In this document: positions 33,399 through 60,135 of the stretch, piece after piece
Layout of the letters: each line of letters begins with the position of its first letter
Position numbering within the stretch: position 1 is the stretch's first letter
Virus record (IMG/VR): IMGVR_UViG_3300046665_000548
Location: 124,001 to 188,000 of that record
Strand: one strand, 5' to 3'
Length of the DNA stretch: 64,000 nt
Notes under the pieces: generated by a model
Seen by the model: the letters and a program-made list of their open reading frames with translations, nothing else
What the model was told of the DNA's origin: nothing
Database searches by the model: none
Made by a program: the position numbers and the translations under genes

Positions 33399-33476
33399 AT
33401 GAAGAAGTTAGCCGTTCAGTTTTTGCGACTTATGAACCCGTCCGCCTTGGCGGCCGGGAACGATTTAGCGCACTGA
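33399..33476 (+). CDS. putative leuS leader peptide MKKLAVQFLRLMNPSALAAGNDLAH
   Basis: TAAATA 5 nt upstream; 5 Leu codons (TTA, TTG, CTT, TTG, TTA); followed by an SD-sequestering hairpin. Confidence 0.7.
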   Translation: MKKLAVQFLRLMNPSALAAGNDLAH

Positions 33477-33485
33477 CGGCATGCT

Positions 33486-33516
33486 CTCAAGAGTGTGTCG
33501 CCCACACACTTTTGAG
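33486..33516 (+). promoter_or_regulatory. 13-bp hairpin sequestering the leuS Shine-Dalgarno
   Basis: CTCAAGAGTGTGT/ACACACTTTTGAG includes GAG of GAGGA. Confidence 0.7.
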
Positions 33517-33522
33517 GACGAA

Positions 33523-34785
33523 ATGGAAAACGATTTTTACTGCACCGTCATGTTTCCGTATCCATCTGGAGCGGGACTGCACCTGGGCCATTACTACAAT
33601 TACGCGATCACCGACTCGTACTGCCGATGGCTGCGCTATCGCGGGCAGTCTGTGTTTCAACCATTCGGCTATGATGCCTTTGGTCTGCCCGCTGAGAACT
33701 ATGCACGCGAGATTGGCGGCGATCCGGCCGATGTGACGCGAGCGAACATTGCGCGTTTTCGCGTGCAAATGGATCGCATGAACACGCAGTTCGATGAGCG
33801 GCTGGTAACATGCGAGCCGCCATATGTGAAATGGACGCAGTGGCTGTTTCTGCGAATGCAGGAGCGCGGACTGGCTTACAAGGCTTGGGGTCGAGTGAAC
33901 TGGTGCCCATCGTGCGAAACCGTACTGGCTAATGAGCAGGTCCAAGACGGCCACTGCGAGCGCTGTAGTTCGGCCGTAGACCCACGAGAGATGAACCAGT
34001 GGTATTTCCGGATCACCGACTACAAAGACCGCCTGATTGCCGGACTGGATCATATCGATTATCCGGAAGGCACAAAGAAAATGCAGCGCGTCTGGCTGGA
34101 GAACCTGCAAGATTGGTGCGTGTCTCGTCAACGTAAATGGGGCTGCCCGATCCCGGTAGAGGGAGAAACGGATACCCTGGATACGTTCGTGGACTCGTCA
34201 TTTTACTTTCTGCGGTATCTGACCGATTCGACGGAGGAGTTTTTGCCAGAGGGTGCGTTCAAACAGGTCGATCTGTACGTGGGCGGGGCCGAGCATGCCT
34301 GTATGCATCTGATCTACGCGCGCTTTGTGCATATGTTTCTGTATGATATCGGCGTCGTTCCAGTTGAGGAGCCATTCAAAAAGGTCATTCACCAGGGCAT
34401 GATCACCAAGGATGGGGCAAAGATGTCCAAGTCCAAGGGAAACGCGGTCAACGCGGATGATTATGATGCGGATGAACTGCGGTTCTACCTGATGTTCCTG
34501 GGACATTACTTCGACGGTGGTGATTGGTCCGATCAACACATCACTGGCGTTCGTCGCTTTTTCGGCAAGATGAAACGTTGGATGAGCGAACCCGGCTCGG
34601 ATCAAATCGACACGTCTAAGTTCGAGGAACTGATCGACCGCAACACGCGAGCGTTCAAGTTCAACAAGGTGGTAAGCGGCTTCATGGAGTTCTATAATCA
34701 GAACAAATCACGTAAGCCTGATGCGGAAAGCTGTCAGAAAATCGAGACACTACTGCGAATATTCGCACCTGGATTCGGTAACTAA
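33523..34785 (+). CDS. leuS: leucyl-tRNA synthetase, minimal (no CP1 editing domain)
   Basis: MFPYPSGAGLHLGH, GYDAFGLPAEN, WCPSCETVLANEQV, DWCVSRQRKWG, DTFVDSS, KMSKS; only 420 aa. Confidence 0.9.
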   Translation: MENDFYCTVMFPYPSGAGLHLGHYYNYAITDSYCRWLRYRGQSVFQPFGYDAFGLPAENYAREIGGDPADVTRANIARFRVQMDRMNTQFDERLVTCEPPYVKWTQWLFLRMQERGLAYKAWGRVNWCPSCETVLANEQVQDGHCERCSSAVDPREMNQWYFRITDYKDRLIAGLDHIDYPEGTKKMQRVWLENLQDWCVSRQRKWGCPIPVEGETDTLDTFVDSSFYFLRYLTDSTEEFLPEGAFKQVDLYVGGAEHACMHLIYARFVHMFLYDIGVVPVEEPFKKVIHQGMITKDGAKMSKSKGNAVNADDYDADELRFYLMFLGHYFDGGDWSDQHITGVRRFFGKMKRWMSEPGSDQIDTSKFEELIDRNTRAFKFNKVVSGFMEFYNQNKSRKPDAESCQKIETLLRIFAPGFGN

Positions 34786-34834
34786 TGTCTGTGAAATTTT
34801 TGAAATACGTGCCGCGATGGCCAAAGCGGGTTGT

Positions 34835-34863
34835 TAGCCGGGCTCCTTTTTGGAGCCCGGTTA
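34835..34863. terminator. 12-bp hairpin downstream of leuS
   Basis: TAGCCGGGCTCC/GGAGCCCGGTTA. Confidence 0.5.
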
Positions 34864-35145
34864 CTCATCCAAGGTTACTGAGTAAAGGTTGGGGGCCGTT
34901 TCGTTCGGAATGGTATTCGTTCTGCTCTCGGCATCCATATCATGACGAGACCTGCGGCGCGTGTCACGCCGGAACATGGAATAACATCTATAAGCTGTGG
35001 ATTTCCAACAAAGTCCACGACTGGGCGTATCCGCTATGGTATTGGTGGAAGAACTCAAGGATATCGAAATGACTTTTGATCTCGGAATACCTCCATTCAC
35101 CCGCGCGCGGCATCGGGCCGCACCACCTCGCGGGTGGAGGATGAC

Positions 35146-35391
35146 ATGGCTAAACGAGCAGAACGACGACACCACCGTGCCCGCCTAAAGCAAGCGCGAA
35201 GCGGCTATCATGGAGCCGGAAAATATTGGACTCCAGACGAAAAGGTACTTTCACGTTGGGTTGACACACCGTGCCCATGTTCGTGCATGGGATGTGGCAA
35301 TCCGCGCCGTACTTCTTGGTCTACCGGAGAACGACTAACGATCCAGGAGCGCCGGTTCTTTTGCGCACCGATTGATCCCATGGAGATGTAA
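35146..35391 (+). CDS. small basic Cys-rich protein
   Basis: MAKRAERRHHRARLK...CSCMGCGNPRR...LTIQERR; GGAGG SD within a hairpin. Confidence 0.7.
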   Translation: MAKRAERRHHRARLKQARSGYHGAGKYWTPDEKVLSRWVDTPCPCSCMGCGNPRRTSWSTGERLTIQERRFFCAPIDPMEM

Positions 35392-36193
35392 TGCAGATCG
35401 AGAACCGCATTAGTATCATCAAGCGTCGCATCAGCGATCTTGAGCAACGATCAGAAGAAAATGGCGATCATGTTTACCAGTTAAGGGATGATATCTTGTC
35501 TGGAAAGATCAGCCAAAGTGAATTTACCGCTAGACTAGATCGGGTTCGCGAAGTACATTCCAGTCTTCGTGTCGAGCTTGATGCTTTGGCGCGCGAAGCT
35601 GGAGCGTTACGTGGAGCAATTACATCGTGATTATCTAGATATCTTGGCGAAGAAGTTTCGCGCCGAGGTAATGATCGTAACTGCCGATGCTTTTATTGAT
35701 AGGCATCTCGACACTGGTCTGACAATCGAAGACATGGCGACGCGGTTGAACACCAGCGCCGATGCGATTCGCCGTATGTTCGACATGAATGACCCCGCTA
35801 CCAAACGGGGTCTCGGTCTGTTGTCCGATATGTGCGCCGCTTTGGGATGCCGCCCGGTCGTTACCATTCGCGATATCGGCAGTCCTCCTGAAATCACTAC
35901 AGATCGCGAAACTCGTACCGGGGACCATCTGCTCCAAGTGGCGAAATCGCTCGGGTGGCCCGACGATGGCGAGGGCGCGCTTGAGTTCGTTATGCGGAGG
36001 ACACGTGAGGTTGCGCTCGAAGATGCAGCAGCCACGACCGCGCTCCGAGAGATCGCGTCTATCGGTGCCCAAATCACTGATCCGGACAACGTATACGGGG
36101 TTCAGATGACGAACCTTGCCATCGCCGCGTTGGCGCGTCCTCCTGGTTCACAAAACACTTGACGTTTTTCTAATTCCTGTCATTGGATACGGC

Positions 36194-38002
36194 ATGCACG
36201 AATATCGTTCCCATACTTGCGACTCGCTGTCGCCATCACAAATCGATCAGACAGTTCGCCTGTCCGGTTGGTGTCACCGTATCCGTAACCATGGTGGTAT
36301 CCTTTTCATCGATCTTCGCGATCACTACGGCATCACGCAGTGCGTGATCGATCCCGCAGTTCTCCCTCAGGCTGAAAGCCTTGGTGAAGAATGGGTGATT
36401 CGCGTCGATGGTACAGTGCGATTTCGACCCCCAGGTACCGAGAATTCAAAACTCTCGACAGGAGAGATCGAGGTAAAGGTAGCTTCGCTTGACGTGCTCG
36501 GACCGGTCGTCGGGGCGCTGCCGATGCCTGTCGCGCATCTCCATTCCACGAGCGACGGTACGTTGCAGGAAGTCGAATATCCAGAAGACCTTCGGTTGAA
36601 ATATCGATTCTTGGACCTTCGCCGCGAACGGCTGCACGAGAACATGATGAAGCGAATGAAAATCATTCGCTGGCTGCGTCATCGCATGGAGGACGAAGGC
36701 TTCTTCGAATTCCAGACGCCCATCCTTACCGCATCGTCCCCAGAAGGGGCGCGAGACTTTCTCGTGCCTGCTCGGTTGCATCCAGGCAAGTTCTACGCGT
36801 TGCCGCAGGCTCCGCAGCAGTTCAAGCAACTTACCATGGTTGCTGGCTTCGACCGATACTTTCAAATTGCGCCATGCTTCCGTGATGAAGCTGCACGTTC
36901 AGATCGGTCACCGGGCGAGTTCTATCAACTCGACATCGAAATGAGTTTCGTAACTCAGGAAGACGTGTTTCGGGTTGTCGAACCGACGATTCGAGATTTG
37001 TTCAAGGAGTTCGGCGGCGACAAAGCCATCACCGAGACCTTCCCGCGTATTCCGTACAAGGAAGCGTTGCTGCGTTTTGGTACCGATAAGCCAGACCTGC
37101 GTAACCCTCTGCGTATTGTGGACGTGTCCAAGGCTCTCCAAGCCGACGACATGACACTCGCCCCTTTCAAGAAAGGCGTCGGCAGAGCTATCGTTGTGCC
37201 AGCCGCGATGCTGGCCGGGAAGTCGCGCAAGTGGTTCAAGGATATGGAAGGCTGGGCACAATCCCAAGGCGCGGCCGGTTTAGGATATCTGAGCGTCATG
37301 CTGACCGATGGTCGCGTGAGCTTCGCTGGACCGCTTGCTAAGTTTTTCGGTGAGCAATCTAGCGAGTTGGTTCGCGTCGCCGCCGACACAATCTTTGACG
37401 AGGGAGATGTCATTTTCTTCGCCGTTGGCGAGGAAAGCTCCACCATCAAATTCAGTGGACTGCTTCGTACAAAGCTCGGAGAGGAGCTTGGTCTGATCGA
37501 GCAAGACCGGTTCGAGTTCTGCTGGATCGTGGATTATCCCATGTTCGAGTGGAATTCTGACGAGAAGAAGATCGACTTCTCCCACAACCCCTTCTCGATG
37601 CCTCAGGGCGGCCTGGAGGCGCTTGAGGGCGATCCATTAGGTGTTCTTGCCTATCAGTACGATATCGTCTGTAATGGCATCGAGCTTTCGTCTGGTGCCA
37701 TCCGGAACCATCGACCAGATATCATGGAGAAGGCGTTCTCCATCGCTGGCTACGACAAGGAGGTGTTGGAAGAAAAGTTCGGCGGCATGCTGAATGCATT
37801 CCGTTGCGGAGCACCACCGCATGGTGGAATTGCACCGGGTATCGACCGCATGGTTATGCTTCTGTGCGAAGCTGAGAACCTGCGCGATGTCGTGCTGTTC
37901 CCAATGAACCAGAAAGGACAAGACCTGATGATGGGCGCTCCGTCTTCAGTAACTGCAAAGCAACTTGACGAGTTGAATATCAGGATCATTCCGAGGAAAT
38001 AA
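36194..38002 (+). CDS. aspS: aspartyl-tRNA synthetase (non-discriminating type)
   Basis: [50 protein letters not shown]. Confidence 0.95.
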
Positions 38003-38014
38003 ACGGAGGATATC

Positions 38015-38176
38015 TTGCCAGCAGCACGTAAATCGAACAACGGACCTAGCTTCTCGAAGAAGTCTCTCACGAAGCCCCGCGCCGAGTATAGTGATCGAGT
38101 CAATCGACGTTGGGGAAACTTGAAGACCAGCAAGAGCACTAAGATCGGCAACCTGAAACGCTGGAGCCGTTGGTAA
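38015..38176 (+). CDS. small basic protein (53 aa, TTG start, not in ORF track)
   Basis: GGAGGA SD; MPAARKSNNG...KRWSRW. Confidence 0.6.
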   Translation: MPAARKSNNGPSFSKKSLTKPRAEYSDRVNRRWGNLKTSKSTKIGNLKRWSRW

Positions 38177-38182
38177 TTCCCA

Positions 38183-38371
38183 ATGGGTGATGGCTCTAAA
38201 AATGGCGTCGGAACGGGCATGCGCAAGCATGGCCGTTCCGGTCATAACGGAAAATCTCCGAAGATGCGTCACCACGAACGTCTCTTAGCTGAACGTAACG
38301 AGGTCAAGGATCGCACACGTCTGAAGGACCCCAAAGAATCGGTCTCTGACCTTTTCCATAAGAAACCCTGA
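38183..38371 (+). CDS. small basic protein
   Basis: K/R/H-rich 62 aa in an operon. Confidence 0.55.
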   Translation: MGDGSKNGVGTGMRKHGRSGHNGKSPKMRHHERLLAERNEVKDRTRLKDPKESVSDLFHKKP

Positions 38372-38652
38372 TGTTGGACAAGGACGAGGCGTCGCTTCTA
38401 AATTCAATCTACACGCGGTCTATGGAGCAGGGTCGTGAGTGGTTTCCTTGCATCTGCAAAAAACAAGCGAGAATGGATGCGAGCGTACGGCTTATCAAAG
38501 CCGGGTTAATTGCTGTCGGAGAACGCGAGCCGCACCATCAGAGACTTCCACATTATTGGAGGATTCTCGGCCTCACCGAACAGGGAAAATTTATCGCCAA
38601 ACTATCTGGTTTCGATCTAGACATTTCAGACGAAGATTGGTAAATAACAACG

Positions 38653-38697
38653 ATGAATTCCACTCTCACCTACTTTGAGGCGATACGCACGCTCTAA
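38653..38697 (+). CDS. putative leader peptide MNSTLTYFEAIRTL with an ATA codon
   Basis: TAAATA 6 nt upstream; ATA at 38683; hairpin and two AUA-type tRNAs directly downstream. Confidence 0.6.
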   Translation: MNSTLTYFEAIRTL

Positions 38698-38714
38698 CCC
38701 CGAAAGGGGCTTTT

Positions 38715-38806
38715 GGGCGTGACCTTAGGTAGGGCGAGGGATTTATATCCCCTTTCAGGCGGTAGATGACCGTTCGGCTGTTGAGGTTCGAATCCTCCCG
38801 CGCTCA
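38715..38806 (+). tRNA. atypical tRNA-Ile(TAT) with long variable arm
   Basis: GGGCGTG/CGCGCTC acceptor, loop TT-TAT-AT, GGTTCGAATCC T-loop; reduced D-arm, ends ACTA rather than ACCA. Confidence 0.65.
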
Positions 38807-38817
38807 CTACATTTTTC

Positions 38818-38892
38818 GGGGGTGTAGCTCAATGGTAGAGCCGTTCACTCATAATGGACCGGTCGCTGGTTCGATTCCAGCCGCCCCCACCA
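38818..38892 (+). tRNA. tRNA(CAT), most likely Ile2 (lysidine type)
   Basis: Loop CT-CAT-AA; CTCATAAT...GGTCGCTGGTTC resembles E. coli Ile2; paired 1-72, so not an initiator. Confidence 0.85.
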
Positions 38893-39365
38893 TAAATGTC
38901 TCAAACGCAGTCTTGGGCGTGTATTCGTTGTCGTGAAACTCAAAGAGAAGTCCCTATGAAGAAGTTTCTGAAGACGATCATCGATCCGAACTGGCGACCG
39001 CATGATGGACCTATTCCGTTCATGAGAAATTACGGCGCGGCAATTGTCGCGATTGATCTGGCAATCATCATCGCTATCTTATTGCGAAAGATAGTAGGGT
39101 TGTCGCTATAGTCGTTTCATGTCAGATCATCTCGCATATGCATTCGTAATGGAAACCTTCCTCAAGCGGGAGCGCATTGGTTACAGCCGCCGTAACGCGG
39201 CGACCTCCAACAGCATTTACTTTCGACTGCAAGGGAAACGCCATCCATACACACTGCGGATCAGCGATCACGCAGCGATAGAAGAGAAATCCGAAACAGG
39301 ATGGGCAAGGTCTCCGGATTTCAACATCCAATCCTTTGCCGATCTAAAACGGGTTCAAACTACTC

Positions 39366-40076
39366 TCAGCGCGTTGATGAGATAGGGTGTAAATCTTCCT
39401 GGTGGAATACAAGGAAGATGGTCTGTGATTCTGGGCTGCTATCCCAATGTCTGCGGTTCCAAATGATCCCGCGTAGACCAGAGCCCTCCAGCAAGGCTCG
39501 ATACGCCTTGCAGTAGTCGGCGCTCTTACAAACCCGCGTGTAGTATTCCCGGCTCTTCTCAAGCGCGCGATACTTAGCAACCTTATCGGGTTGGCTCCAT
39601 CGAAGAACAGCCACTTCCATAGAGTTTTCGCCCTGTCGCTCCGCTTCGCGCTTTGCCTCGATCCTCAGGTCTTTCATGAACTTGATGTTCGCGCCGTTCA
39701 GGGGATACTTGGAGAGATGATCGGCGGCATCTTTGCCTACTGTGTCGCGAATGATCGGCAGACAATTCAGTACAAGCTCCCAGAAATCCTGATCGCGGCG
39801 AGCTAACAGGTATCGGCCTGGAGGAATTTGATAACCCTCAACGTTTGGCCCGTACATAGTCGTGGCCATCTCGCGGTTCGACGTGAGGTAAGTCCCCATA
39901 CTGTCGTAGGTCTTGATCTCGCGATTGGTAAGGACCTTGCCTAGAGCTTCGTGCGTGGCATGATATGCCATGACCGGCTTCTGTAGCGTGATTTCCTGAC
40001 CAAAAGACGAGCGAGAGTTCGGTTCGATAACCCCGCGATAACGTTCTGAAGCCTCTTTGATCTCACTGTAGCGCAT
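39366..40076 (-). CDS. ART-like protein, late leaderless
   Basis: AYHAT...GTYLTSNREMA..YG; TAAATA 4 nt upstream; MRYSEIKE. Confidence 0.55.
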   Translation of the reverse strand: MRYSEIKEASERYRGVIEPNSRSSFGQEITLQKPVMAYHATHEALGKVLTNREIKTYDSMGTYLTSNREMATTMYGPNVEGYQIPPGRYLLARRDQDFWELVLNCLPIIRDTVGKDAADHLSKYPLNGANIKFMKDLRIEAKREAERQGENSMEVAVLRWSQPDKVAKYRALEKSREYYTRVCKSADYCKAYRALLEGSGLRGIIWNRRHWDSSPESQTIFLVFHQEDLHPISSTR

Positions 40077-40136
40077 CACCTATTTAGAACCTTCAACTTA
40101 TTGCGTTTACTCCTCATCTGGCGATATTCTGGTTCG

Positions 40137-41123
40137 ATGCACGAATATACGCACAACGGTCATTTCAAGTGGGGCTTCAACGGCGTGTGGGGGTCGCCGC
40201 CTTCTAAAGAAGCTGGTCCCCAAAGCTACGCTGTGAAGTTTGGCGTGTCGAGTGGGCGCAAGCCGAATTTCGGTAAGGCGTGTCTGTCGGCCGCTCAGTT
40301 GATACGCGACAAAACCGATCTTCCAATCAACGTCGCGTTGTCCGGAGGTTACGACAGCGAAGTCACACTGCGATCTTTCGTTGATAGCGGCATTCCTGTT
40401 ACGGCGTACGTTGCGCGCTTCAAAGATGATGTAAACGTTGAGGAGTTCGAAACAGCCTGTTCGGTAGCAGATCGTTACGGCGTTCCTCTAAAGATTCTTG
40501 ATCTCGATGTGATCAAGTTCTGGGAAGAGAACTGGCGAGACTACGCTGACAGATACCATGTCATCTCTGGTCAATTCATGGTTCACATCTGGATCATGTC
40601 TCAACTCGATGGCTTCCCCGTTATCGGCGGGGGCGATCCCTATTTGGTGCTGACTAATCCGGATGACTATCAGGCGGCGGACGAAGACAAACGCTGGTAT
40701 TGTCGCTTCCTATCGAGGCAGCTTTCGACTACGCATTACCTGACCAGTGTTGATCGTCCAGGCGTCCCATTGTTTTATTACTATACTCCGGAACTTATTC
40801 TGTCATCGTTCGCCAACAATCACGTGGAATCTTTCATCCGTTACTGGGGCGACATCTACGCGAAATACATTACGAACTCACGGATCAAAAAACTCGTCTA
40901 TGGAGATGACTTTCCAACTCACATAGACAGACCGAAGCGAACTGGTTTCGAAGACATCGAGATCGAAGATATGGCCATTCGAAAGAAGTTGCGCACGATC
41001 TCAGAAAACCGAAACCCGCAGGCCATCTATCCGCGTGAGGATTTTGTAGCTGCGCTTCGTGGTGAACGAGAGTATCCAATCGATTGGGCCGCCCACTCCT
41101 ATACAAAGAGACTGTTTCCGTGA
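40137..41123 (+). CDS. PP-loop (asparagine synthase-like) adenine nucleotide alpha-hydrolase
   Basis: VALSGGYDSE; paralog of the next gene. Confidence 0.7.
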   Translation: MHEYTHNGHFKWGFNGVWGSPPSKEAGPQSYAVKFGVSSGRKPNFGKACLSAAQLIRDKTDLPINVALSGGYDSEVTLRSFVDSGIPVTAYVARFKDDVNVEEFETACSVADRYGVPLKILDLDVIKFWEENWRDYADRYHVISGQFMVHIWIMSQLDGFPVIGGGDPYLVLTNPDDYQAADEDKRWYCRFLSRQLSTTHYLTSVDRPGVPLFYYYTPELILSSFANNHVESFIRYWGDIYAKYITNSRIKKLVYGDDFPTHIDRPKRTGFEDIEIEDMAIRKKLRTISENRNPQAIYPREDFVAALRGEREYPIDWAAHSYTKRLFP

Positions 41124-43982: not shown

Positions 43983-44057
43983 GAGCGCGTAGTTCAGCGG
44001 AAGAACACCGCCGTCCTAAGGCGGGTGTCGCAGGTTCAAATCCTGCCGTGCTCTCCA
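43983..44057 (+). tRNA. tRNA-Arg(CCT)
   Basis: Loop GT-CCT-AA, A20, U73, CCA; TAAATA at 43970-43975. Confidence 0.9.
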
Positions 44058-44059
44058 CA

Positions 44060-44569: not shown

Positions 44570-44570
44570 T

Positions 44571-44864: not shown

Positions 44865-46151
44865 ATGCATGACATTAACTACATTCGCGATAATCCAGAT
44901 GCTTTCGATGCTGGTCTGGCGGCGCGCGGCCTCAAATCTCAGTCCGAAATATTGATCAACATCGATCAGTCGCGTCGGCACGCCCTGACCGAGCTTCAGC
45001 AAAGACAATCCAAGCGCAACGAGTTGTCGGCGCAAATTGGCGCGGCGATGAAGGCTGGTCAACGCGATGAGGCCGAACGCCTTAAGACAGAGGTGGTAAC
45101 GCTTAAGCACGCAATCGAAGATTGGACCGGTCGCGCTGCAACGTCTCAGACCATACTAACGCATGAACTGGAGCGTATCCCGAATCTACCGGCCGCCGAT
45201 GTGCCCGTTGGCAAGGATGAAACTGCAAATCATTTGGAAACAGTTTGGGAGCCGGACGGTGGGAGGCGCGTGATCGCCAATCCGAAGCCTCACTGGGAGC
45301 TAGGCGAGGCCCTGGGGATGATGGACTTCCAAGCTGGCACGATGCTGGCTGGGCCGAGAAGCACTGTTCTCCGTGGTCCTCTGGCCAAGCTAGCGCGGGG
45401 TCTCGGCAACTGGATGATCGACACTATGACGTTGGAGGGATACAGCGAGGTCGATGTGCCTTGTATCGTCAACGGTGAGATCATGCACGGCACAGGCCAA
45501 CTCCCCAAGTTCGAGGCCGACGCTTATCGGCTGAACGATGCCGACCAATATCTGATCCCCACGGCCGAAGTACCTCTCACCAATCTTGTACGAGACCAGA
45601 TCGTAGATGAGGATGCGCTTCCTCTTCTGTATACGGCTCTGACCCCTTGCTTTCGAAAAGAAGCAGGATCGGCTGGCCGCGACGTGCGTGGCATGATGCG
45701 CCAGCACCAGTTCATGAAATGCGAAGTCGTGATGATCACTCAGCCAGAGTTTTCTGAGATCGACCACATGAAAATGCTCATGCATGTAGGCAACCTCCTC
45801 AAACGACTTTTCCTACCTCACCGGTACATGAAGTTGTGCAGCGGGGACATGGGCTTTTCGGCAAAGAAGACTTACGATTTCGAGGTTTGGCTTCCGAGCC
45901 AAGATGCGTATCGTGAGATTTCTTCCGTGTCGAATTGCGGAGATTTCCAGGCTAGGCGAATGAACGCTCGCTTCCGCAAAAAGGATGGCTCGATCCACTA
46001 TCTGCACACTCTCAATGGGTCTGCTATGGCTGTCGGCCGGACGTTGATTGCCGTCATGGAGAACTACCAGAACGACGACGGATCGATCACGATCCCAGAC
46101 GTTCTCATTCCCTATGTTGGTTTCGGTAAAATCGAAGCGGGCATGCGCTGA
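44865..46151 (+). CDS. serS: seryl-tRNA synthetase
   Basis: GTGQLPKF, YLIPTAEVPL, FRKEAGSAGRDVRGMMRQHQF, EISSVSNCGDFQARR, TLNGSAMAVGR. Confidence 0.96.
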   Translation: MHDINYIRDNPDAFDAGLAARGLKSQSEILINIDQSRRHALTELQQRQSKRNELSAQIGAAMKAGQRDEAERLKTEVVTLKHAIEDWTGRAATSQTILTHELERIPNLPAADVPVGKDETANHLETVWEPDGGRRVIANPKPHWELGEALGMMDFQAGTMLAGPRSTVLRGPLAKLARGLGNWMIDTMTLEGYSEVDVPCIVNGEIMHGTGQLPKFEADAYRLNDADQYLIPTAEVPLTNLVRDQIVDEDALPLLYTALTPCFRKEAGSAGRDVRGMMRQHQFMKCEVVMITQPEFSEIDHMKMLMHVGNLLKRLFLPHRYMKLCSGDMGFSAKKTYDFEVWLPSQDAYREISSVSNCGDFQARRMNARFRKKDGSIHYLHTLNGSAMAVGRTLIAVMENYQNDDGSITIPDVLIPYVGFGKIEAGMR

Positions 46152-51774: not shown

Positions 51775-52449
51775 TCATTTCCTGGAAATTGTTCGAACCG
51801 TACGATCCTGCACGTCCTCCGGAAGGATCACGATTTCATCCTCACGGTCTAACAGCGCCAGAACTTTGTTTTTTGGAGCTAACCCCGACGCAAGCCGAGG
51901 ATTCCGGCACTGACCATCTGAAAAGCGACGAGCAAACCATATCGCGGCCTCCTTGTCGAAGCTCCAAGAGAGCCCATCCAAGCCGTCCTTGTGCGTGAAC
52001 CCTCGCCATATCGGGATTAGGTCTGGCATGGAAGAAAGTCGCTGGCGCTGCTCTTTGCTCATCGCGTAATTGATTTCTTCGTCCAGCACCGGCTGCCACG
52101 TATCGCGCCAGTCATCCAAATTCTGCCAGATGTTCTCGCTGTCCACCCATACCTTTCCGACAGCGCTCCAATAAGCCTTGGGATCGCGCTGAGCGAGATC
52201 ATCACCAAGGTACTGGTGCAGAGCGTTGAACCGATAAGGACGCTCATGGAGCCATATAACGGCATCCCATCGTCGTTCTTTGAGAGCTTCCTCCAGAGCA
52301 TCCTTCTTACGAAGATACATCCGGTTGATCAGATCATATTCGTTGGAGAAAATACTCGCGATCACCAAAGGCGAATGGACGAGCCGCCCGAGAACGGTCG
52401 CTTCCTGAACCCAAGGAACGAGGTCATCATGCAGAGCGGCGTCGCTCAT
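51775..52449 (-). CDS. putative R-S-E type ADP-ribosyltransferase-like protein
   Basis: IWRG...GLSWS...REDEIVI. Confidence 0.55.
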   Translation of the reverse strand: MSDAALHDDLVPWVQEATVLGRLVHSPLVIASIFSNEYDLINRMYLRKKDALEEALKERRWDAVIWLHERPYRFNALHQYLGDDLAQRDPKAYWSAVGKVWVDSENIWQNLDDWRDTWQPVLDEEINYAMSKEQRQRLSSMPDLIPIWRGFTHKDGLDGLSWSFDKEAAIWFARRFSDGQCRNPRLASGLAPKNKVLALLDREDEIVILPEDVQDRTVRTISRK

Positions 52450-53231: not shown

Positions 53232-53443
53232 CGGCCGGAATCCCACCTGAGTTTGAACAGCAACGCAAGCTGCTGTTCCTTAAAATAGAACATCGTCGCG
53301 TCGCCGGGTTCTTCGACGTGACAGTCATCCCAAAATTCACAATTACCAGTCTGCTGAATCAACCATGCGGTGATTTCAGCAAGCTCTCCGCGCGTGAAGG
53401 AGCGACGAATCATCACTCGTTCTGCATAATCGTCTTTGATCAT
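53228..53443 (-). CDS. paralog family protein (FYFKEQQLALLFKLRW)
   Basis: Shared C-terminal motif. Confidence 0.6.
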   Translation of the reverse strand: MIKDDYAERVMIRRSFTRGELAEITAWLIQQTGNCEFWDDCHVEEPGDATMFYFKEQQLALLFKLRWDSGR

Positions 53444-53444
53444 T

Positions 53445-53909
53445 CTACCTGAACTTTTCGACGGCCCTACAAAGGGCTTCGATTTCGAAGTTGGACATTT
53501 GCGAGCGGAGACGATCACGAACCGCTTCAATAGCGGCACGGGTTTCGTCACGATCCTTTTGCGCCTGTTCGGCGGCGGCGCGGGCCTTCTCGTCTTCAAG
53601 TCGGCGCTTCTCAGAAACGGCGGCTGCGTGAGCAATACGGTCCTCGATGGCCTTAAGACCATCTTCGGTTATCGTGTATAAACGGACAGTCCAAACCCGT
53701 CCATGCTTCTCTGGATCGTACCCAAACGAGTGGCGAGGCGCTGGGATATCTTTTTCCTCAGCGGAGACCAGCCCTCGCTTCATGAGGCTTTCGAGGATGC
53801 TTGCGTGGGTACTGCCCCACAGCCATCCAGCGCCCTGATACCAACCTTTCTCCCTGTACAGGGTCCAGAGAAAGCTCTTCTGTGAGGTGCCGAGTGGGCG
53901 GGTTTTCAT
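53445..53909 (-). CDS. winged-helix-like hypothetical protein
   Basis: LESLMKRGLV...YTITEDG; TTGACG-N16-TAGATT promoter 7 nt upstream. Confidence 0.55.
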   Translation of the reverse strand: MKTRPLGTSQKSFLWTLYREKGWYQGAGWLWGSTHASILESLMKRGLVSAEEKDIPAPRHSFGYDPEKHGRVWTVRLYTITEDGLKAIEDRIAHAAAVSEKRRLEDEKARAAAEQAQKDRDETRAAIEAVRDRLRSQMSNFEIEALCRAVEKFR

Positions 53910-53945
53910 GGTTGCAAATCTACCATGAAACTGAGTTTCGTCAAG

Positions 53946-54608
53946 TCATTTCTTGAACTGGATAGGTTGCTCGGCAGGGTCTATCATGACTAATCCGGCA
54001 TATGCAGCCCAAGTCTTGGGGTCGCCAAGATTCTTTTCCAAAGCCGCAAGATGAATTTCAACCTGGGGGAAATTCATTAGACCAACCTCTACGGCGGCCT
54101 GTCTGGCGTTCCACTGCGCCTCGTTATAGACAGTAAGCGCGGCATGAGCGTTCGCGTAAACTCGACCAGCCTGTTTCAGTTCTTCGAAAAACTGTTCGTA
54201 GGTCCCGTGATAACGTCCGTCTTCTTTTCTGTATTCGAAATTATTACGGATATTGTCCATGATTTCTCGTTCATGGCCGTATTCGTTCCTGAGGTAGCGA
54301 AGAGCTTTCCTGACCTTGGGCGCAACCGTTCCGTAGCCGCAGTTGCCGTGAACAACGTGTTCGCCATCAGCCATGCGATGAGTCAAATCACCGATATGCT
54401 CGGTATCCCAAGCGTAAAGACCTGCGCCGTGGTGAATATTAGGATTGCCGTTACAGGCACCGCCCATATTTTCAGGCTTTCCCAACTGACCTTTCGCGAG
54501 ACCATCGAACGCTTTGATAGCATTTGATTTGGCTGGCTCCGGTAGAGCCAAGATGACGGCCCATCCGCGAATAACCTCTTCTTCATTGATCAGATCACGA
54601 TATCGCAT
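53946..54608 (-). CDS. late leaderless hypothetical protein
   Basis: TAAATA 4 nt upstream; MRYRDLINE. Confidence 0.7.
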   Translation of the reverse strand: MRYRDLINEEEVIRGWAVILALPEPAKSNAIKAFDGLAKGQLGKPENMGGACNGNPNIHHGAGLYAWDTEHIGDLTHRMADGEHVVHGNCGYGTVAPKVRKALRYLRNEYGHEREIMDNIRNNFEYRKEDGRYHGTYEQFFEELKQAGRVYANAHAALTVYNEAQWNARQAAVEVGLMNFPQVEIHLAALEKNLGDPKTWAAYAGLVMIDPAEQPIQFKK

Positions 54609-54822
54609 GCGATATTTAGTGCTTCTCTACCTTGCGAACGAGTTGAGTCAGTTGATCGGATGTAATGTCGTATACGCGTAAATTCGGCGTTGGTGCGAGA
54701 AGCCAGTATTTCGAATCGAACTCGGACGAGCACGAGGAATCAGCGCCCATGGCTGCTGCGAGTAACACGCATCCTGGGCGCATTAGCGTAATGTCAAAGC
54801 ATATTTTCATCTGAACAGTCCA

Positions 54823-55095
54823 TTAGCCCCATCGGAGCTTAAAGAGTGCGGCGTCACGTGCCCGTCTGAAATAGAAACTCGATTTGTACCATGTCCAGTT
54901 AAATCCTTCATCGTACATATCGTGAAAGATTCCACCATCCTGATAATGGATCGATCCGGTAATTGGAGTTTTAAAGATATGCTCACCCCACTCGCCAGCC
55001 TCCTGTAGAGGTCCGAATTCATTGAGCGTTATGACGTGAGGTAAGCGCTTCTTAAGCCAATCATCAAGCTCAGACTGTTTAACCCGCGTCGGCAT
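54823..55095 (-). CDS. paralog family protein (FYFRRARDAALFKLRWG)
   Basis: Shared C-terminal motif. Confidence 0.65.
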   Translation of the reverse strand: MPTRVKQSELDDWLKKRLPHVITLNEFGPLQEAGEWGEHIFKTPITGSIHYQDGGIFHDMYDEGFNWTWYKSSFYFRRARDAALFKLRWG

Positions 55096-55903
55096 GGAAC
55101 ACCGGATCGGCGTCTTCGAAGATCATTTCCACTCGGTTTTTTATCTTTAGTATCTTTGGGAAGTGGAACGTCCGTAGACGACTTCTCACAACGGGACCAG
55201 TCGGCCGTCTTGCCTCTGGAATGAGAACTAATTTCTCAGCAGGAAGCTCAGCCTCGAACACCTCTGAACGAATGAACGTCCCGCGTTTGAACGCTTCGGG
55301 ATAATCCTCGAACGTCACACCCTTCTCGCTCAGCAATTCAACCATTCCCTGACGAGATACGCCATTAAGCCGCTTGTGGCTCAAATGATGATGTGCGGCC
55401 ATCGAAACGGAATTGCGTTCGGCGTCGAGCACTCTCCAGAGAATTGCATTGGCAGCTTCTTCCTTTGACGGAAGCTCAAACACCCGAGCGTCGAAATGCG
55501 GAAGCTTGTCAGCATTCTTCGCGAACTGTTCGCTGCTTGCTAGCACAGCCTGATTGAAACGGGCCGTCGCCATGCCAGCAAGGATCGAGCATAGCTTCTG
55601 CACCTTGCCGCCAAACATCAGTTCCTGAGCCGGGTTCTCGCCATCGAGGTACCAAAGCAGAGAAATTTCATCCGACTGCGTATAGCCGATAACCGCATTT
55701 GTTTTCTGAACCAAATAAGATGCGGTCTCAACCATGCAGGCGTGAAACTCGGCGTCGAACGGGCGGACCATTCCCTTAGTGAACTTAGAGAAACCTCGGC
55801 CGTCAATTCGAGCATAGAGCGGCTGCCGCGCATCGAAACGAAGGGAGGTCTGCGCCGACTCGTACTGTTTCATACGGTCGCCCAAATCATCTTTAAACAT
55901 CAC
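55079..55903 (-). CDS. tRNA(His) guanylyltransferase Thg1-like protein
   Basis: RMKQYE, RIDGRGFSKFT, GYTQSDEISL, FGGKVQK, FDARVF. Confidence 0.93.
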   Translation of the reverse strand: MMFKDDLGDRMKQYESAQTSLRFDARQPLYARIDGRGFSKFTKGMVRPFDAEFHACMVETASYLVQKTNAVIGYTQSDEISLLWYLDGENPAQELMFGGKVQKLCSILAGMATARFNQAVLASSEQFAKNADKLPHFDARVFELPSKEEAANAILWRVLDAERNSVSMAAHHHLSHKRLNGVSRQGMVELLSEKGVTFEDYPEAFKRGTFIRSEVFEAELPAEKLVLIPEARRPTGPVVRSRLRTFHFPKILKIKNRVEMIFEDADPVFHADAG

Positions 55904-56568
55904 TGTCCTCTCGGAGGAGACCTTTTCGTTTCAGTCCGGCAACCTCGTCGTCAGGCACGAATCTTTTCATCCCGTTGATGAACGTGACTTTCGTGTAGCT
56001 GGTTGTCGTCCCACCCGTGTAAAGATCAAGCTCGATCTCGCGCTTGATCTCGTCTAGTACACGCGACCGTTCTTCGTTGAGTTCAACGACAAGCTTTTCA
56101 TTCAGCCGGAGTGCTTCAACGGCAGCAAGAAACTCACTCACGTTGCCTTCATTACGAGGATCAGCGTGTAGGGCTTCGACAGCCTTCCGGTGCCGCTCAC
56201 GCGCCTTCTCGCCATCAACCTTCCACGCTTTCGTGTAGGCTTCGTTAGCAAGGTCGAAACGTTTTCGCTCGTCTTTGGTCTGGGCTCGCATTACTTTACT
56301 CGAAAGCATGTATGATAGGGACGAACTAGCTGAAAATACTCGTCCTTTTTGGGCTCAGATGGCTTCGCGGACTTTTCATCTTTTTCCGCGTCATCTTCTT
56401 CTTCGGTAGCGTGCTCTTGGGCTATACCCGTGTGAGTCTTTACCAAAGCGAGGCCCGCTGCTTCGCACAAGTCCTTGGAAGCGAAACCGTCGAAACGATC
56501 TCGCTCCAAGCGCACGTCAGCACCACTCGATTGCTGGATGAAGAGCAGCGTGAATAGGAGCGTCCACA

Positions 56569-56988
56569 TTAGACGAGCGCATCCTTGACTACCTGCGACG
56601 CAACCTTGCCGTCATAACGACCACCGTAGTTGTCCTTCAGGTGCTTCATCACGATGCCCATGTTCGCGCTGGGGTTCTCTCGGCGGATGACGAGAACGAC
56701 TTCACGAAGCTCATCCTGGCTCATCTGCTGCGGCAGATAAGCTTCGAGAATTTTGATTTCGGCCGCGATCTTGTCCGAGGGGGCAAGACCCATGGTCTCG
56801 CGGGCATTCTTGAGGAACTTTTGAACCATCGCGATAGCCTCCTCCTCGGTGGTCTCGCGATTACCCGCGTCCTTTCCGACGCGATCCGCTTCGCCCTTCA
56901 GGGCGGTAAGCAGACCGATGGCGGTCTCGTCCTTTGCCTTGCGAGCCTGGAGTTGATCGGCGCGAATGCGCTCCATCAGCGTCGTCAT
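56569..56988 (-). CDS. GatB/YqeY domain protein
   Basis: ARKAKD, EIKILEAYLPQQMS, MGIVMKHLK...G.YDGK. Confidence 0.9.
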   Translation of the reverse strand: MTTLMERIRADQLQARKAKDETAIGLLTALKGEADRVGKDAGNRETTEEEAIAMVQKFLKNARETMGLAPSDKIAAEIKILEAYLPQQMSQDELREVVLVIRRENPSANMGIVMKHLKDNYGGRYDGKVASQVVKDALV

Positions 56989-57030
56989 GATACGGTCCTC
57001 TATATTAAAGAATGCGTGTGTACCAGAAAA

Positions 57031-57573
57031 TCAGCTTTTGGCAACATTGTTTCGTGAATTTGGTGCAGAAGAACCACTGCACAGGAGTGGTACCAGAGGG
57101 CGCTTCGCCAGATTGCTGTTGGCATATCGGTTATCGTGAGAGACCTCTTCGCCAAGCCAGTCCGGCGTAACAAAGTCTTCATCCTCTCCCCCAAGCTCGA
57201 TTTCGGCCGTCACAAGCCCGTCGTGCGCACCTTCGAACACATCCACATGCCAGACATGCGAGGGATCATCTTTAACCAACACGTGATATCGCGTCTTGGA
57301 AAGAACGTACTCGCACAATTTGAGCATTTCGTTCGCGTCATCGTATGGCACCTCATATTCGTACTCGGCGCGAGATACCCCGGATGTCTTGCCCTTGACT
57401 GTCAAAAATCCCTGACGCCGGTCGCCGTCCACGACTGTACGAACGCGCACGACCGATGGCTTGGTTTGAAGGTAGCCCTGGCAGAGCTTTTCGCCGTTGG
57501 CGCTTTTCCAGCAGCCAATCTCCCGCCAGCCATCACTCTTAACTAGGAATTTTCTCTCAATCTCTACAGGCAT
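57031..57573 (-). CDS. CYTH-domain triphosphate tunnel metalloenzyme
   Basis: EIERKFLV, QGYL, VRVR, TVKG, EYEY, AEIEL. Confidence 0.92.
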   Translation of the reverse strand: MPVEIERKFLVKSDGWREIGCWKSANGEKLCQGYLQTKPSVVRVRTVVDGDRRQGFLTVKGKTSGVSRAEYEYEVPYDDANEMLKLCEYVLSKTRYHVLVKDDPSHVWHVDVFEGAHDGLVTAEIELGGEDEDFVTPDWLGEEVSHDNRYANSNLAKRPLVPLLCSGSSAPNSRNNVAKS

Positions 57574-57620
57574 TCATTTTCCCCAACTAAAGTAAGTTCT
57601 GATCCCTCCTAAATAGCAGG

Positions 57621-58097
57621 ATGATGACCATTCGGGAAATACTGTTGTTGCTTGAGAGCGAAGAAATTCAGCCTCCGGATCACGTTCGGGCGGCGGAGAT
57701 GGATTCCAGGCTGCGCGACGTTGTGAGCGCTCTCCCACCGGTTACAGAGTGGGTCCCGCTTTTGAGGTCTCAAGCATGGTTCTCTCCGTTGCATTTCAGC
57801 GGCAACGAGGCAAATGCCATGGACTTCCAACCGAACGAATACGTATATTCACCAGTGGTCGATATTAGAACTGACCCGACCGCAAGAAGCGCGCATTATC
57901 GTAGAGGCGTGAAGAAGTATGTCGCGGCATTACGGCGCGGCGATACCTTGCCTCCGATCACGTACGTGTGGAATGCCCATTACTTAAAATGGAACATGCT
58001 CGACGGCAACCACCGTTCACAAGCTTACGCAGAGACAGGCACCTCAAAGATGCCTGCCATCTTTGCTTACCCTATTCGGGCTTTACTCCAACGGTAG
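57621..58097 (+). CDS. ParB/Srx-like domain protein, late leaderless
   Basis: LPPI...MLDGNHR; TAAATA 5 nt upstream; MMTIREILLLLE. Confidence 0.65.
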   Translation: MMTIREILLLLESEEIQPPDHVRAAEMDSRLRDVVSALPPVTEWVPLLRSQAWFSPLHFSGNEANAMDFQPNEYVYSPVVDIRTDPTARSAHYRRGVKKYVAALRRGDTLPPITYVWNAHYLKWNMLDGNHRSQAYAETGTSKMPAIFAYPIRALLQR

Positions 58098-58469
58098 GTC
58101 GCGATCTCGTTCAATAGGGGAATTGAGGAAGGCCGTCTTATCAGGACGAGTCGCTTTGTCCTCACGGGTCTCTCGTTTACGGCGACGCATCTGCTTGGCA
58201 ACCTTCTCCATGGCTACACCAAACGCGACGTAGATATCCTTGTGGGAATGTTCGCCAATGAATGGAGGTATACTTCCAACGTGAACGTTTACTGTGCAAA
58301 CGTAAGACGAGCCTTCTTGGCGGAAATGCACGGATGCAGATGTTATTCGATTGAACCATTTCGAAGCTGTCAGGACGATAGTGCTACGAACATGTTCGGG
58401 GAGAGCATCTCCTAGATCAATATGAGCCCCTTGAACTGTGATCTCTTTATCGACACCTTGAAGCTTCAT
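58083..58469 (-). CDS. hpf: ribosome hibernation promoting factor (HPF/RaiA, S30AE)
   Basis: ITVQGAHIDLGDAL...DIYVAF..AMEKVAKQMRRRKR. Confidence 0.85.
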   Translation of the reverse strand: MKLQGVDKEITVQGAHIDLGDALPEHVRSTIVLTASKWFNRITSASVHFRQEGSSYVCTVNVHVGSIPPFIGEHSHKDIYVAFGVAMEKVAKQMRRRKRETREDKATRPDKTAFLNSPIERDRDLPLE

Positions 58470-58870
58470 GCATTCTCTCCATTGGGTGACATATTTGTGG
58501 TTCGATTCCACGATGCCGTCAAGGACCCCTGAACTAAATATAACCGTGCAGATCATTGGAACAAATCGTCGCGAAGGAATTGACTGGGTTCAAGATAAAC
58601 TCGGTCCTATGTGCCCGCGCACCACGGCCGAAACAACTTTCTTGGGGCTTCTCAAGGAAGGTCAGATCATCGGCTGCAAATCCGCATTCATTCTAGCGGA
58701 AGACATGGGAGACGATGATCTTCGCAACATCGCTACCGATGAAGTAAAAAAGCGAATGTCCGAACAGGACAAGAAGCGACGTAAAGCACCTCGCGCGAAT
58801 AACAATTTCGCAGTAAAGCGAGACGGCAGCGAGGACGATGGTTCTTTGATCACCGTCCAAGTGCCAAACC

Positions 58871-59539
58871 CTACGCCTTCTTCGCAACCTTAATTCGATA
58901 GCTGCGAACCTGCGCGCGGATTTCACCCCGATCATACTTTGCGAACCGCACAAGATTTTCCATCAACGCCAGCACCAGAGCGGGACTGTACTTGTGGCCG
59001 TACAAGGGCCAGAGAGTATCGAGCAGGACGCGCGGGATGGTGGGCTTGGCTTGGACGAACATCACGTACTCAGGAGCGCCGTTCTTATTGAAGCGGCGCT
59101 TGAACTTGCTCTGGCCACCCTTGCCCTGGACGAAAATGGGCGGATGCTTAGAACGATCATTATAGAGCTTGCTCACCACCTTTTGGACCTCAGCCATGGT
59201 TGCAGGCTTCGCCTTGGGCGTAACCTCTTCGTACCACCAACGCCAAATGCGTGAAGATTGATAGTCACGAGGCTTTGACGCCTTGAACCTTTTAGGTCCT
59301 GCTTCTAGCTGAGCGTAAAATCCGACCTCGGCCGAATCATAATCAGTAAAGCTTTGTACCCAACGCAACTGGGTACTAGCGACAACCGTTCGGCCGTTCC
59401 AACCTTCCCAGCCAACAAAGTACCAGTTATTGGCCGCCCGACCCAAGACCAACTTGGCTTCGGTCTGGAGATGAGGAACCCTCATAAGAATTTCGGCTGG
59501 TTGTAGTGTAAGATCAAGAGTTGATCCAAACAAACCCAT
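58871..59539 (-). CDS. hypothetical protein
   Basis: GAGGAG SD, 222 aa. Confidence 0.65.
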   Translation of the reverse strand: MGLFGSTLDLTLQPAEILMRVPHLQTEAKLVLGRAANNWYFVGWEGWNGRTVVASTQLRWVQSFTDYDSAEVGFYAQLEAGPKRFKASKPRDYQSSRIWRWWYEEVTPKAKPATMAEVQKVVSKLYNDRSKHPPIFVQGKGGQSKFKRRFNKNGAPEYVMFVQAKPTIPRVLLDTLWPLYGHKYSPALVLALMENLVRFAKYDRGEIRAQVRSYRIKVAKKA

Positions 59540-59817
59540 GGCAAACTCCTCTGTTATGGGCTCAGATGATGTAAATCACCAACGCATATATTGTACGATA
59601 CTTCACGTATACACACAAGAGCTATGTTATTTGCTCAAACGACTTTGTTGCTTCAACTATTGTTCGTTTTTACTTTGGCTTGTTTTTGGCTTTACTTGTC
59701 TAATCTTAAAGTATGCACGTTTTGAACAGTATTCTCATAGATCAATACAATCATAAAACGAGTGACAAATTCGGAGAATCTGGTAAATACAAGCCATTCC
59801 CAACTATGGAGAAGGAA

Positions 59818-60135
59818 ATGCGTAAGGTGCCCAGGCGAAGGAGCACGACTGCTCGTGCTCTGTCCGACACTCGCTACCGTCAGCGGGTAGTCATCTCGAA
59901 GAAGGTTTATTCCAGGAAGGCTCGATCTCAGAAGGTCGAGCCTTCTGACTTCCGGGGATGCGGAGATTGGGTGGGGTATTCTCCGCATATAGTGCGGAGA
60001 ATGATTGGCACGCCCGGAGAGATTCGAACTCCCGACCTACAGGGTAGAAACCTGCCGCTCTACCGGCTGAGCTACGGGCGCATGCGATTATTTAACATTC
60101 TCGATACCAAAAGAATAGCAAAAATGCTTGCATAA
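59818..60135 (+). CDS. ArfA-like (alternative ribosome-rescue factor) basic protein, probably from a truncated mRNA
   Basis: ARALSDTRYRQRVVISKKVYSRK resembles ArfA [30 protein letters not shown] SD; in-frame hairpins before any stop. Confidence 0.55.
   Translation: MRKVPRRRSTTARALSDTRYRQRVVISKKVYSRKARSQKVEPSDFRGCGDWVGYSPHIVRRMIGTPGEIRTPDLQGRNLPLYRLSYGRMRLFNILDTKRIAKMLA
60006..60081 (-). tRNA. tRNA-Arg(TCT)
   Basis: Reverse-complement cloverleaf, loop TT-TCT-AC, G73, CCA; TAAATA at 60089-60094. Confidence 0.92.

Follow-up and report, generated by a model that had tools for sequence, protein, structure and literature searches.

Huge bacteriophages are known to carry sizeable parts of a translation apparatus: genomes with up to 67 tRNAs and up to 15 aminoacyl-tRNA synthetases (aaRS) have been described, with the proposal that the synthetases charge phage variants of tRNAs (Al-Shayeb et al., 2020; PMC7162821), and Thg1 has been listed among the RNA-repair genes of jumbo phages (Iyer et al., 2021; PMC7824862). 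The locus considered here lies in a 64,000-nucleotide stretch of DNA (hereafter the window) that makes up bases 124001-188000 of a single 607,744-bp contig from JGI metagenome 3300046665, an IMG/VR virus record with a CheckV completeness of 100%. Between window positions 33,399 and 60,135 it encodes a shortened leucyl-tRNA synthetase (mini-LeuRS), an AspRS, a SerRS and several other proteins predicted to act on tRNAs or ribosomes. Like the repertoires of the two studies cited, this genome combines a length above 500 kb with dozens of tRNAs, a tmRNA, several aaRS “distinct from but related to” the host enzymes, tRNA-modification and repair genes, and the sporadically occurring Thg1 and CYTH; it also holds HPF and YqeY, which go unmentioned in the main texts of PMC7162821 and PMC7824862. 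A translation-gene load of this kind is a trait already described for huge phages.

We read the region, with a probability of about 0.7, as the stretch of a complete 608-kb phage genome where translation-support genes are most concentrated, its gene content and order suggesting a loose modular island rather than one regulated machine. The set comprises three aaRS, three tRNA genes, an operon with the order HPF-CYTH-YqeY-x-Thg1, a stand-alone OB domain and a pair of PP-loop proteins (Table 1), and this content does point to predicted roles in supplying and charging tRNAs, in repairing their ends and in ribosome hibernation. The genes for LeuRS, AspRS and SerRS span 12.6 kb and form the densest aaRS cluster of the genome. 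An earlier note on this DNA, made from its letters, had placed three aaRS within 13 kb, correctly, and called this unusual for a phage, which is true of ordinary phages but not of huge ones, where up to 15 occur and of which the present genome, with eight aaRS-type genes, is an example. The same note took the whole for an inducible system that keeps translation going; support of translation is what the gene content indicates, but a single inducible, attenuator-controlled system is not borne out by the gene order or the leader sequences.

The closest relative found, a 92.5-kb Logan contig (SRR13312979_8507, comprising loci L026 and L028) with 60-88% amino-acid identity, shares a long run of genes with the window: LeuRS, a 95-residue open reading frame (ORF), the 81-residue phrog_4499 protein, a 79-residue ORF, the N-terminal half of a 193-residue ORF, the 53-residue protein, a 236-residue gene, both PP-loop genes, the OB domain, tRNA-Arg(CCU) and SerRS. 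AspRS, the 62-residue ORF and tRNA(CAU) are all absent at this place, and because AspRS is missing from an otherwise syntenic relative it counts as an insertion or a deletion. The order HPF-CYTH-YqeY-(133 aa)-Thg1 is found in this relative too (L028). Across the region as a whole, the translation genes fall into at least three blocks on both strands, among about 40 unrelated ORFs, many of them ORFans; such an arrangement, together with the gain or loss of AspRS, speaks against one system. Conserved modules do exist, namely the operon resembling a tRNA-end-repair unit and the block from LeuRS to SerRS, and the whole is best described as an accretion of modules.

Inducibility had been tied to attenuators, and the sole element of this sort is the leader of LeuRS, with an upstream ORF (uORF) of 25 codons and a 13-bp hairpin that overlaps the GAGGA ribosome-binding site with its 3′ arm. 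Folding of the leader gives a z-score of -2.98 (1 of 200 shuffles folds as well). In L026 the uORF retains its frame and stop codon, and both an internal hairpin and one close to the Shine-Dalgarno sequence are kept. The element is not conserved in loci L005-L011, where tRNA genes or unrelated sequence stand instead, and an exact match to its motif was not found in IMG/VR. Neither a run of Leu codons in the uORF nor a U-tract after the hairpin is present. Rfam finds only tRNAs, both at the gathering score and at E<=1, with no T-box or other leader RNA, and promoter-like and terminator-like sites are at or below shuffled-sequence expectation. Translational control of LeuRS by its leader is possible and classical attenuation is not supported; an inducible system would have to rest on one uORF and hairpin, common to a single close relative and absent from the more distant ones.

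The gene that the earlier note listed as LeuRS does encode a LeuRS catalytic core with both signature motifs. The product is, however, only 420 residues long, scores 406.2 bits against TIGR00396, under the cut-off of 548.4, and is without three domains of the canonical enzyme. Its alignment to T. thermophilus LeuRS covers positions 36-226, 418-436, 487-578 and 636-707, and since it jumps over the CP1 editing domain and the leucine-specific domain, both are judged absent, with a ‘TKDG’ tetrapeptide in the place of the latter; the C-terminal tRNA-binding domain is gone as well, because the chain stops before the end of the anticodon-binding domain. In a whole-genome search with the LeuRS model, positions 222-410, 571-603 and 746-843 were unmatched anywhere in the genome. 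The phage protein thus resembles the split alpha/beta LeuRS of Aquifex aeolicus in being one polypeptide without the full domain set, but differs in that the genome encodes no second LeuRS piece, and a split enzyme of that type is ruled out.

A closer counterpart is the active, naturally CP1-less LeuRS of M. mobile (3ziu), the top structural match of the AlphaFold2 (AF2) model of mini-LeuRS (predicted local distance difference test, pLDDT, 89), with 34% identity and a template-modelling (TM) score of 0.91 when normalised to the phage model, or 0.63-0.67 when normalised to the M. mobile chain. The CP1 editing domain is absent in both, and in both a tetrapeptide fills the place of the leucine-specific domain, TKDG in the phage and, in M. 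mobile, the GKDG that is described as standing for this domain (PMC3643597). They differ in that the M. mobile enzyme, at 637 residues, retains full anticodon-binding and C-terminal tRNA-binding domains, whereas the phage chain ends at about model position 745 of 843 and covers only some 63-67% of the M. mobile chain. Mini-LeuRS is probably a streamlined, editing-free enzyme that still makes Leu-tRNA-Leu, and it would charge tRNA-Leu without proofreading.

Mini-LeuRS belongs to a sizeable family. A protein search recovers more than 100 clusters of 412-443 residues with 65-88% identity, many of them on contigs of 100-630 kb; seven loci in IMG/VR carry the gene. LeuRS homologues are present in 635-kb and 735-kb phages of Al-Shayeb et al., and LR745206, a 635-kb phage of that 2020 study, has the same mini-LeuRS at 65% identity. 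No mention of a domain-minimised LeuRS was found in PMC7162821 or PMC7824862, and a literature search found no description of the family, which is no proof of absence. Across 28 aligned members, mean column identity is 69%, with no variation in HIGH, KMSKS or the zinc-binding cysteines; the gene surroundings of the different loci are almost wholly different. This amounts to strong purifying selection on an intact catalytic core.

The gene stands directly 3′ of tRNA-Leu genes in loci L007 and L009/L010, and several relatives have unusually short tRNA-Leu genes, of 74-76 nt, nearby. The adjacency in relatives is what points to tRNA-Leu as the likely substrate. Ordinarily, tRNA-Leu has a long variable arm. 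Seven tRNA-Leu genes are present in this genome, each with A73 as its discriminator, and one of them is short (Table 1). It is tempting, though the suggestion is tentative, to see the 420-residue enzyme as the first representative of a family of minimal LeuRS, devoid of editing and widespread among huge phages, that would charge phage tRNA-Leu, including those with a short variable arm, without a C-terminal tRNA-binding domain. The family would belong to a broader group of phage synthetases that lack editing, and the phage would give up accuracy in exchange for speed or for independence of its host; YqeY or the OB protein might then help mini-LeuRS in trans.

An AspRS with the non-discriminating (ND) signature and a SerRS are both confirmed. 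The AspRS has full bacterial length, with the Pfam domains tRNA_anti-codon, tRNA-synt_2 and GAD, and among PDB entries it is closest to the Asp/Asn enzyme of P. aeruginosa, 4wj3 (E 7e-138), with which it shares a His and a Gly of the anticodon domain. At ‘RNHGGILF’ and ‘RPPGTEN’ the phage protein agrees with ND enzymes from P. aeruginosa and mycobacteria: the ND chains 4wj3, 5w25 and 4o2d read DHGG and RPEG where the phage protein reads RNHGG and RPPG, and the discriminating AspRS of T. thermophilus has DLGG, with Leu, at the first site and a gap at the second. Bernard et al. (2006) reportedly found that this His (‘H31’) and Gly (‘G83’) govern the recognition of tRNA-Asn. At the level of sequence, the assignment to the non-discriminating type holds up. 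Two tRNA-Asn genes were found in the genome, and no AsnRS, LysRS or GatB; tRNA-Asn genes without AsnRS fit the indirect Asn-tRNA pathway, from which the phage departs in having no GatCAB and only two GatB-tail/YqeY-like proteins. Since the genome lacks both AsnRS and GatB, a phage ND AspRS would have to use the host amidotransferase. In a related huge phage (L011, 12912-14315) an AspRS adjoins mini-LeuRS, apparently without the GAD insert, the counterpart of residues 305-441 of the window AspRS being unmatched. The SerRS is complete, residues 1-418 aligning to positions 1-418 of the TIGR00414 model.

Further aaRS were sought genome-wide with class-representative models. This yielded five more aaRS-type genes (ArgRS, TyrRS, ThrRS, GluRS and an AlaRS-like gene), for a total of eight, and no Val, Ile, Met, Phe, Asn or Lys synthetase. 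ArgRS and TyrRS both exceed their model cut-offs. Residues 160-462 of the ThrRS align to E. coli ThrRS 322-624, and because the alignment begins at 322 the TGS domain and most of the editing domain are taken to be missing. The in-frame TGA of the GluRS gene could reflect a gene split, decay to a pseudogene or readthrough. Together, mini-LeuRS, the ThrRS and the AlaRS-like protein suggest that the synthetases of this phage are generally stripped of editing modules.

On the opposite strand, the assignments of Thg1-like, YqeY, CYTH and HPF genes have stood, each by Pfam matches that are those recorded for the contig’s own gene calls, and HPF also by a score above its NCBIfam cut-off. The best PDB match of the Thg1-like protein is the Thg1-like protein (TLP) of B. 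thuringiensis, 4kgk (E 2.8e-36 over 214 residues); the phage copy retains both catalytic motifs, RIDG and SDE, and differs in standing in an operon with YqeY, CYTH and HPF. CYTH is closest in the PDB to N. europaea NE1496 (2fbl/3typ, E ~1e-13) and keeps the EIERKFL / ExExK motif. On a distant 576-kb phage contig (L029), YqeY, an RNA ligase and Thg1 lie in one operon; in a second distant locus this linkage is missing, and peptide patterns found no Thg1 relatives in IMG/VR. No description of a Thg1-YqeY-CYTH-HPF linkage was found in the literature consulted. The basic 222-residue protein upstream of HPF gave no lead. Elsewhere in the genome, at 564388-565191 (locus L019, 89-892), a second GatB-tail/YqeY-like protein of 267 residues is encoded, the catalytic part of GatB being absent.

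Between LeuRS and SerRS lie the PP-loop genes and the OB domain, the latter previously read as a stand-alone tRNA-binding fold. It does stand alone, but it is a domain of the kind found at the N terminus of Rnl5-type RNA ligases rather than a binder of the Trbp111 type: it matches TIGR02306 at positions 3-94 (E 2.9e-6) and the RNA ligase phrog_968 (E 1.5e-7), with an Atlas score of 0.97 to clusters of PF21189, a domain that often occurs alone in phages. A Trbp111/CsaA-type identity was rejected on the ground that only the RNA-ligase N-domain families PF21189 and TIGR02306 match; the domain has no match among PDB sequences, and no full-length Rnl5-type ligase is present in the genome. The PP-loop motif SGGxDSE is invariant in 27 sequences of a small phage-only family, and the N-terminal domain of paralogue 2 is modelled by AF2 at pLDDT >90. 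Foldseek matches of the PP-loop/GNAT protein are to domains of the Asn-synthetase and beta-lactam-synthetase type, at low TM, and to generic GNATs; with no Pfam hits, these low-TM matches and only Atlas leads <0.9, identification of the pair as TilS or TtcA was set aside.

If the modular island acts in support of translation, its synthetases would charge the phage’s own tRNAs, so that the supply of aminoacyl-tRNA would match phage demand late in infection. Mini-LeuRS would serve the seven tRNA-Leu and SerRS six tRNA-Ser; the ND AspRS would charge tRNA-Asp and the two tRNA-Asn, host GatCAB completing the Asn step. The Thg1-like enzyme, with YqeY as a tRNA-binding module, would restore tRNAs whose 5′ ends are damaged, and HPF would modulate the activity of ribosomes. 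Several considerations weigh against this picture. The C-terminal domain of bacterial LeuRS is required for aminoacylation in E. coli, and a LeuRS that lacks it may be a weak charger of tRNA, depend on a partner or have another function. HPF normally silences ribosomes, so that shut-off of the host fits its presence as well as ‘maintenance’ does. AspRS is dispensable in the nearest relative, and the translation genes are not co-transcribed and most ORFs between them have no assigned function, so that a ‘kit’ may be a label imposed on an accretion zone.

Carried to its end, this last objection would make the genes host-derived passengers in a recombination-permissive zone, coordinated in function hardly or not at all. 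Close relatives differ in whether they have AspRS, the neighbourhoods of mini-LeuRS and AspRS homologues in other huge phages have almost nothing else in common, and the genes lie on both strands amid many ORFans, all of which passive accretion would explain; we nevertheless think it unlikely, given the strong purifying selection on the mini-LeuRS family and the preservation of two gene orders, that of HPF-CYTH-YqeY-x-Thg1 and that from LeuRS through the PP-loop genes, OB domain and tRNA-Arg to SerRS, the latter at 60-88% identity. A function of another kind is conceivable for mini-LeuRS in particular, as an aaRS-derived paralogue making Leu-AMP or Leu-tRNA for another purpose, for instance an aminoacyl-tRNA-dependent modification of DNA or other molecules by the PP-loop/GNAT neighbours, or a regulatory or decoy role. 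The loss of three canonical domains and a score under the NCBIfam cut-off would suit such a paralogue, the PP-loop/GNAT pair is kept between LeuRS and SerRS in two phages, and GNAT-fold enzymes can use aminoacyl-tRNA, as Mom does in modifying DNA with Gly-tRNA (PMC13219725). We give this little credence: the catalytic motifs and the overall core closely match active LeuRS, the gene adjoins tRNA-Leu genes in several relatives, most mini-LeuRS loci have no PP-loop/GNAT gene nearby, and the GNAT similarity is only generic.

Counter-defence deserves somewhat more weight, although it too is tentative. The island would then resupply and repair tRNAs cut by host anticodon or acceptor-stem nucleases, phage tRNAs and dedicated aaRS replacing the cleaved host tRNAs and the Thg1-like, YqeY, CYTH and OB proteins serving repair, with demand matching secondary. 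Thg1-like enzymes repair tRNA 5′ ends and are listed with the RNA-repair genes of jumbo phages (PMC7824862), YqeY, RNA ligase and Thg1 share an operon in the distant huge phage, and the OB domain is itself an RNA-ligase module. Yet the genome is without a full Rnl5-type ligase, the aaRS are not themselves repair enzymes, the HPF of the operon is unsuited to a repair role, and nothing ties the island to any particular defence system. The modular translation-support island stays our preferred reading.

The genome as a whole holds 57 tRNAs and a two-piece tmRNA (ARAGORN), which scores 65 bits against the Rfam model alpha_tmRNA RF01849 (gathering score 50) and 102 bits against tmRNA_permuted; a genome-wide search found neither SmpB nor peptidyl-tRNA hydrolase (Pth). 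SerRS is placed among alphaproteobacterial sequences (SH-aLRT 99), on a long branch and without assignment to one order, in a tree whose bacterial sample is biased because it was gathered by peptide patterns. The Thg1-like protein is about 50% identical to TLPs of Bradyrhizobium and Enterovirga (Hyphomicrobiales). From the tmRNA type, the position of SerRS and these identities, the host is probably an alphaproteobacterium, in agreement with the earlier guess. A nucleotide search of GenBank phages with the region gave no match and no near-identical phage. Two adjacent genes for tRNA(CUA), with the amber-suppressor anticodon, lie outside the window at genome 4091-4256 (locus L022) and prompted a search for TAG recoding. 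Genetic code 11 was applied throughout, and was kept because a scan of ORF coverage gave no regional TAG signal and TAG is just the least used stop codon, found at the end of 68 of the 590 genes of at least 100 residues.

Table 1. Features of the region, with related features elsewhere in the genome and in relatives; positions are those of the window unless stated otherwise.
Feature	Position	Strand	Remarks
LeuRS leader	33399-33522	+	25-codon uORF 33399-33476; 13-bp hairpin 33487-33517
Mini-LeuRS, 420 aa	33523-34785	+	Class Ia catalytic core; HIGH (HLGH) and KMSKS; truncated helical domain
95-aa ORF	34785-35072	+	ATG overlaps LeuRS stop (TAATG); 62% identity to L026, E 1.5e-35
81-aa basic Cys-rich protein	35146-35391	+	phrog_4499, E 6.6e-15; 80% identity in L026
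AspRS	36194-38002	+	Bacterial type with GAD insert, ND signature; PRK00476 763.7 bits (cut-off 443)
53-aa very basic protein	38015-38176	+	pI 11.9; TTG start 5 nt after GGAGG
62-aa basic ORF	38183-38371	+	Unconserved
tRNA, anticodon CAU	38818-38892	+	G1:C72 pair; elongator Met or Ile2 type
PP-loop ATPase paralogue 1, 328 aa	40137-41123	+	Phage-only family; 59% identity in L026
PP-loop ATPase paralogue 2 with C-terminal GNAT acyltransferase, 476 aa	41120-42550	+	Same phage-only family
Stand-alone PHA02142 OB-fold domain, 140 aa	42969-43391	+	N-terminal domain of Rnl5/DraRnl-type RNA ligases
tRNA-Arg(CCU)	43983-44057	+	ARAGORN and Rfam; same position in L026
SerRS, full length	44865-46151	+	TIGR00414 469.6 bits (cut-off 301.65)
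Thg1-like	55079-55900	-	Bacterial TLP type; predicted 3′-5′ nucleotidyl transferase; PF04446
132-aa ORF between YqeY and Thg1	55893-56291	-	Position-matched 133-aa gene in relative
YqeY, stand-alone	56569-56988	-	Resembles GatB C-terminal tail domain; PF09424
CYTH / triphosphate-tunnel metalloenzyme	57031-57573	-	PF01928
HPF	58083-58556	-	Short HPF/YfiA type; TIGR00741 48.7 bits (cut-off 40.9); PF02482
tRNA-Arg(UCU)	60006-60081	-	ARAGORN and Rfam
AlaRS-like fragment, 287 aa	genome 29017-29880	+	Bare catalytic core; loci L017/L023
GluRS	genome 211538-212953	-	Single in-frame TGA; 295-aa part and ~167-aa part; locus L018
Short tRNA-Leu, 77 nt	genome 219040-219116 (locus L020)		UAA anticodon; 5-nt variable loop
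tmRNA	genome ~576372-576749 (locus L021)		Alpha-type, two-piece; tag ANDNVAVSEYALAA
ThrRS, 488 aa	genome 592053-593519	-	Loci L017/L023
Short tRNA-Leu genes of relatives	L009 7949-8654; L004 4245-5169		Near the relatives’ mini-LeuRS

Several small ORFs accompany the synthetases, and the earlier note had singled out three basic ones, at 35146, 38015 and 38183, as candidate ribosome binders. The first two are conserved genes and the third is not conserved. The first of them, a real gene, was missed by the metagenome gene caller, which did not call the 95-residue ORF that follows LeuRS either. The 53-residue protein is probably a real gene: its frame and stop are kept in L026 at 73% identity, although L026 has no AspRS, and KxNNGPSFSKK and GNLKRWSRW are motifs common to three homologues of about 50 residues. 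One of these is encoded on a bacterial contig, with rpoN on one side and an hpf-ptsN pair on the other, which hints faintly, and no more, at a connection with ribosome hibernation loci; another adjoins a gene for a P63C-domain protein. The 62-residue ORF has no homologue in NCBIfam, PHROGs or L026 and may not be a gene. It may also be what was once taken for an ArfA-like ORF; a KGKGSY-type motif occurs in no real ORF, and this best candidate is without a family match. The ArfA claim is not confirmed. None of the three basic ORFs matches a ribosomal or rescue-factor family, and ribosome binding by them is pure conjecture.

ARAGORN and Rfam each give 16 tRNAs in the window, one fewer than the 17 counted before. 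The seventeenth may be a tRNA-like remnant at about 38715-38812, with a T-arm-like GGTTCGAATCC, just upstream of tRNA(CAU); neither program calls it, and its fold is no better than those of shuffles. The tRNA(CAU) itself is not an initiator, since the G1:C72 pair is present. An ORF at 59713-60135 is probably spurious, because tRNA-Arg(UCU) overlaps it on the other strand. Beside that tRNA, a 131-residue protein (60213-60608, +) matches phrog_8792 (E 9.5e-26) and also phrog_21421, which is annotated as integrase (E 2.1e-23). Further along the window are a DUF6356 membrane protein (61103-61324, -) and an AMP-binding, adenylate-forming enzyme of 492 residues resembling acyl-CoA ligases (61355-62833, +).

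Taken alone, a translation island in a huge phage is unsurprising, and this one adds a well-annotated example with a likely alphaproteobacterial host. Second in interest is the recurring linkage of Thg1 and YqeY, through which the in vivo role of Thg1-like proteins of the bacterial type could be approached by experiment. Of greatest interest is the mini-LeuRS family, seen together with the other, editing-poor synthetases of this genome: a natural LeuRS at about half size, kept at 65-88% identity in otherwise unrelated huge phages. If active, mini-LeuRS would be the smallest natural scaffold for the charging of tRNA-Leu and a candidate for a compact orthogonal synthetase, and it would mean that leucine charging without editing is something phages tolerate or put to use.

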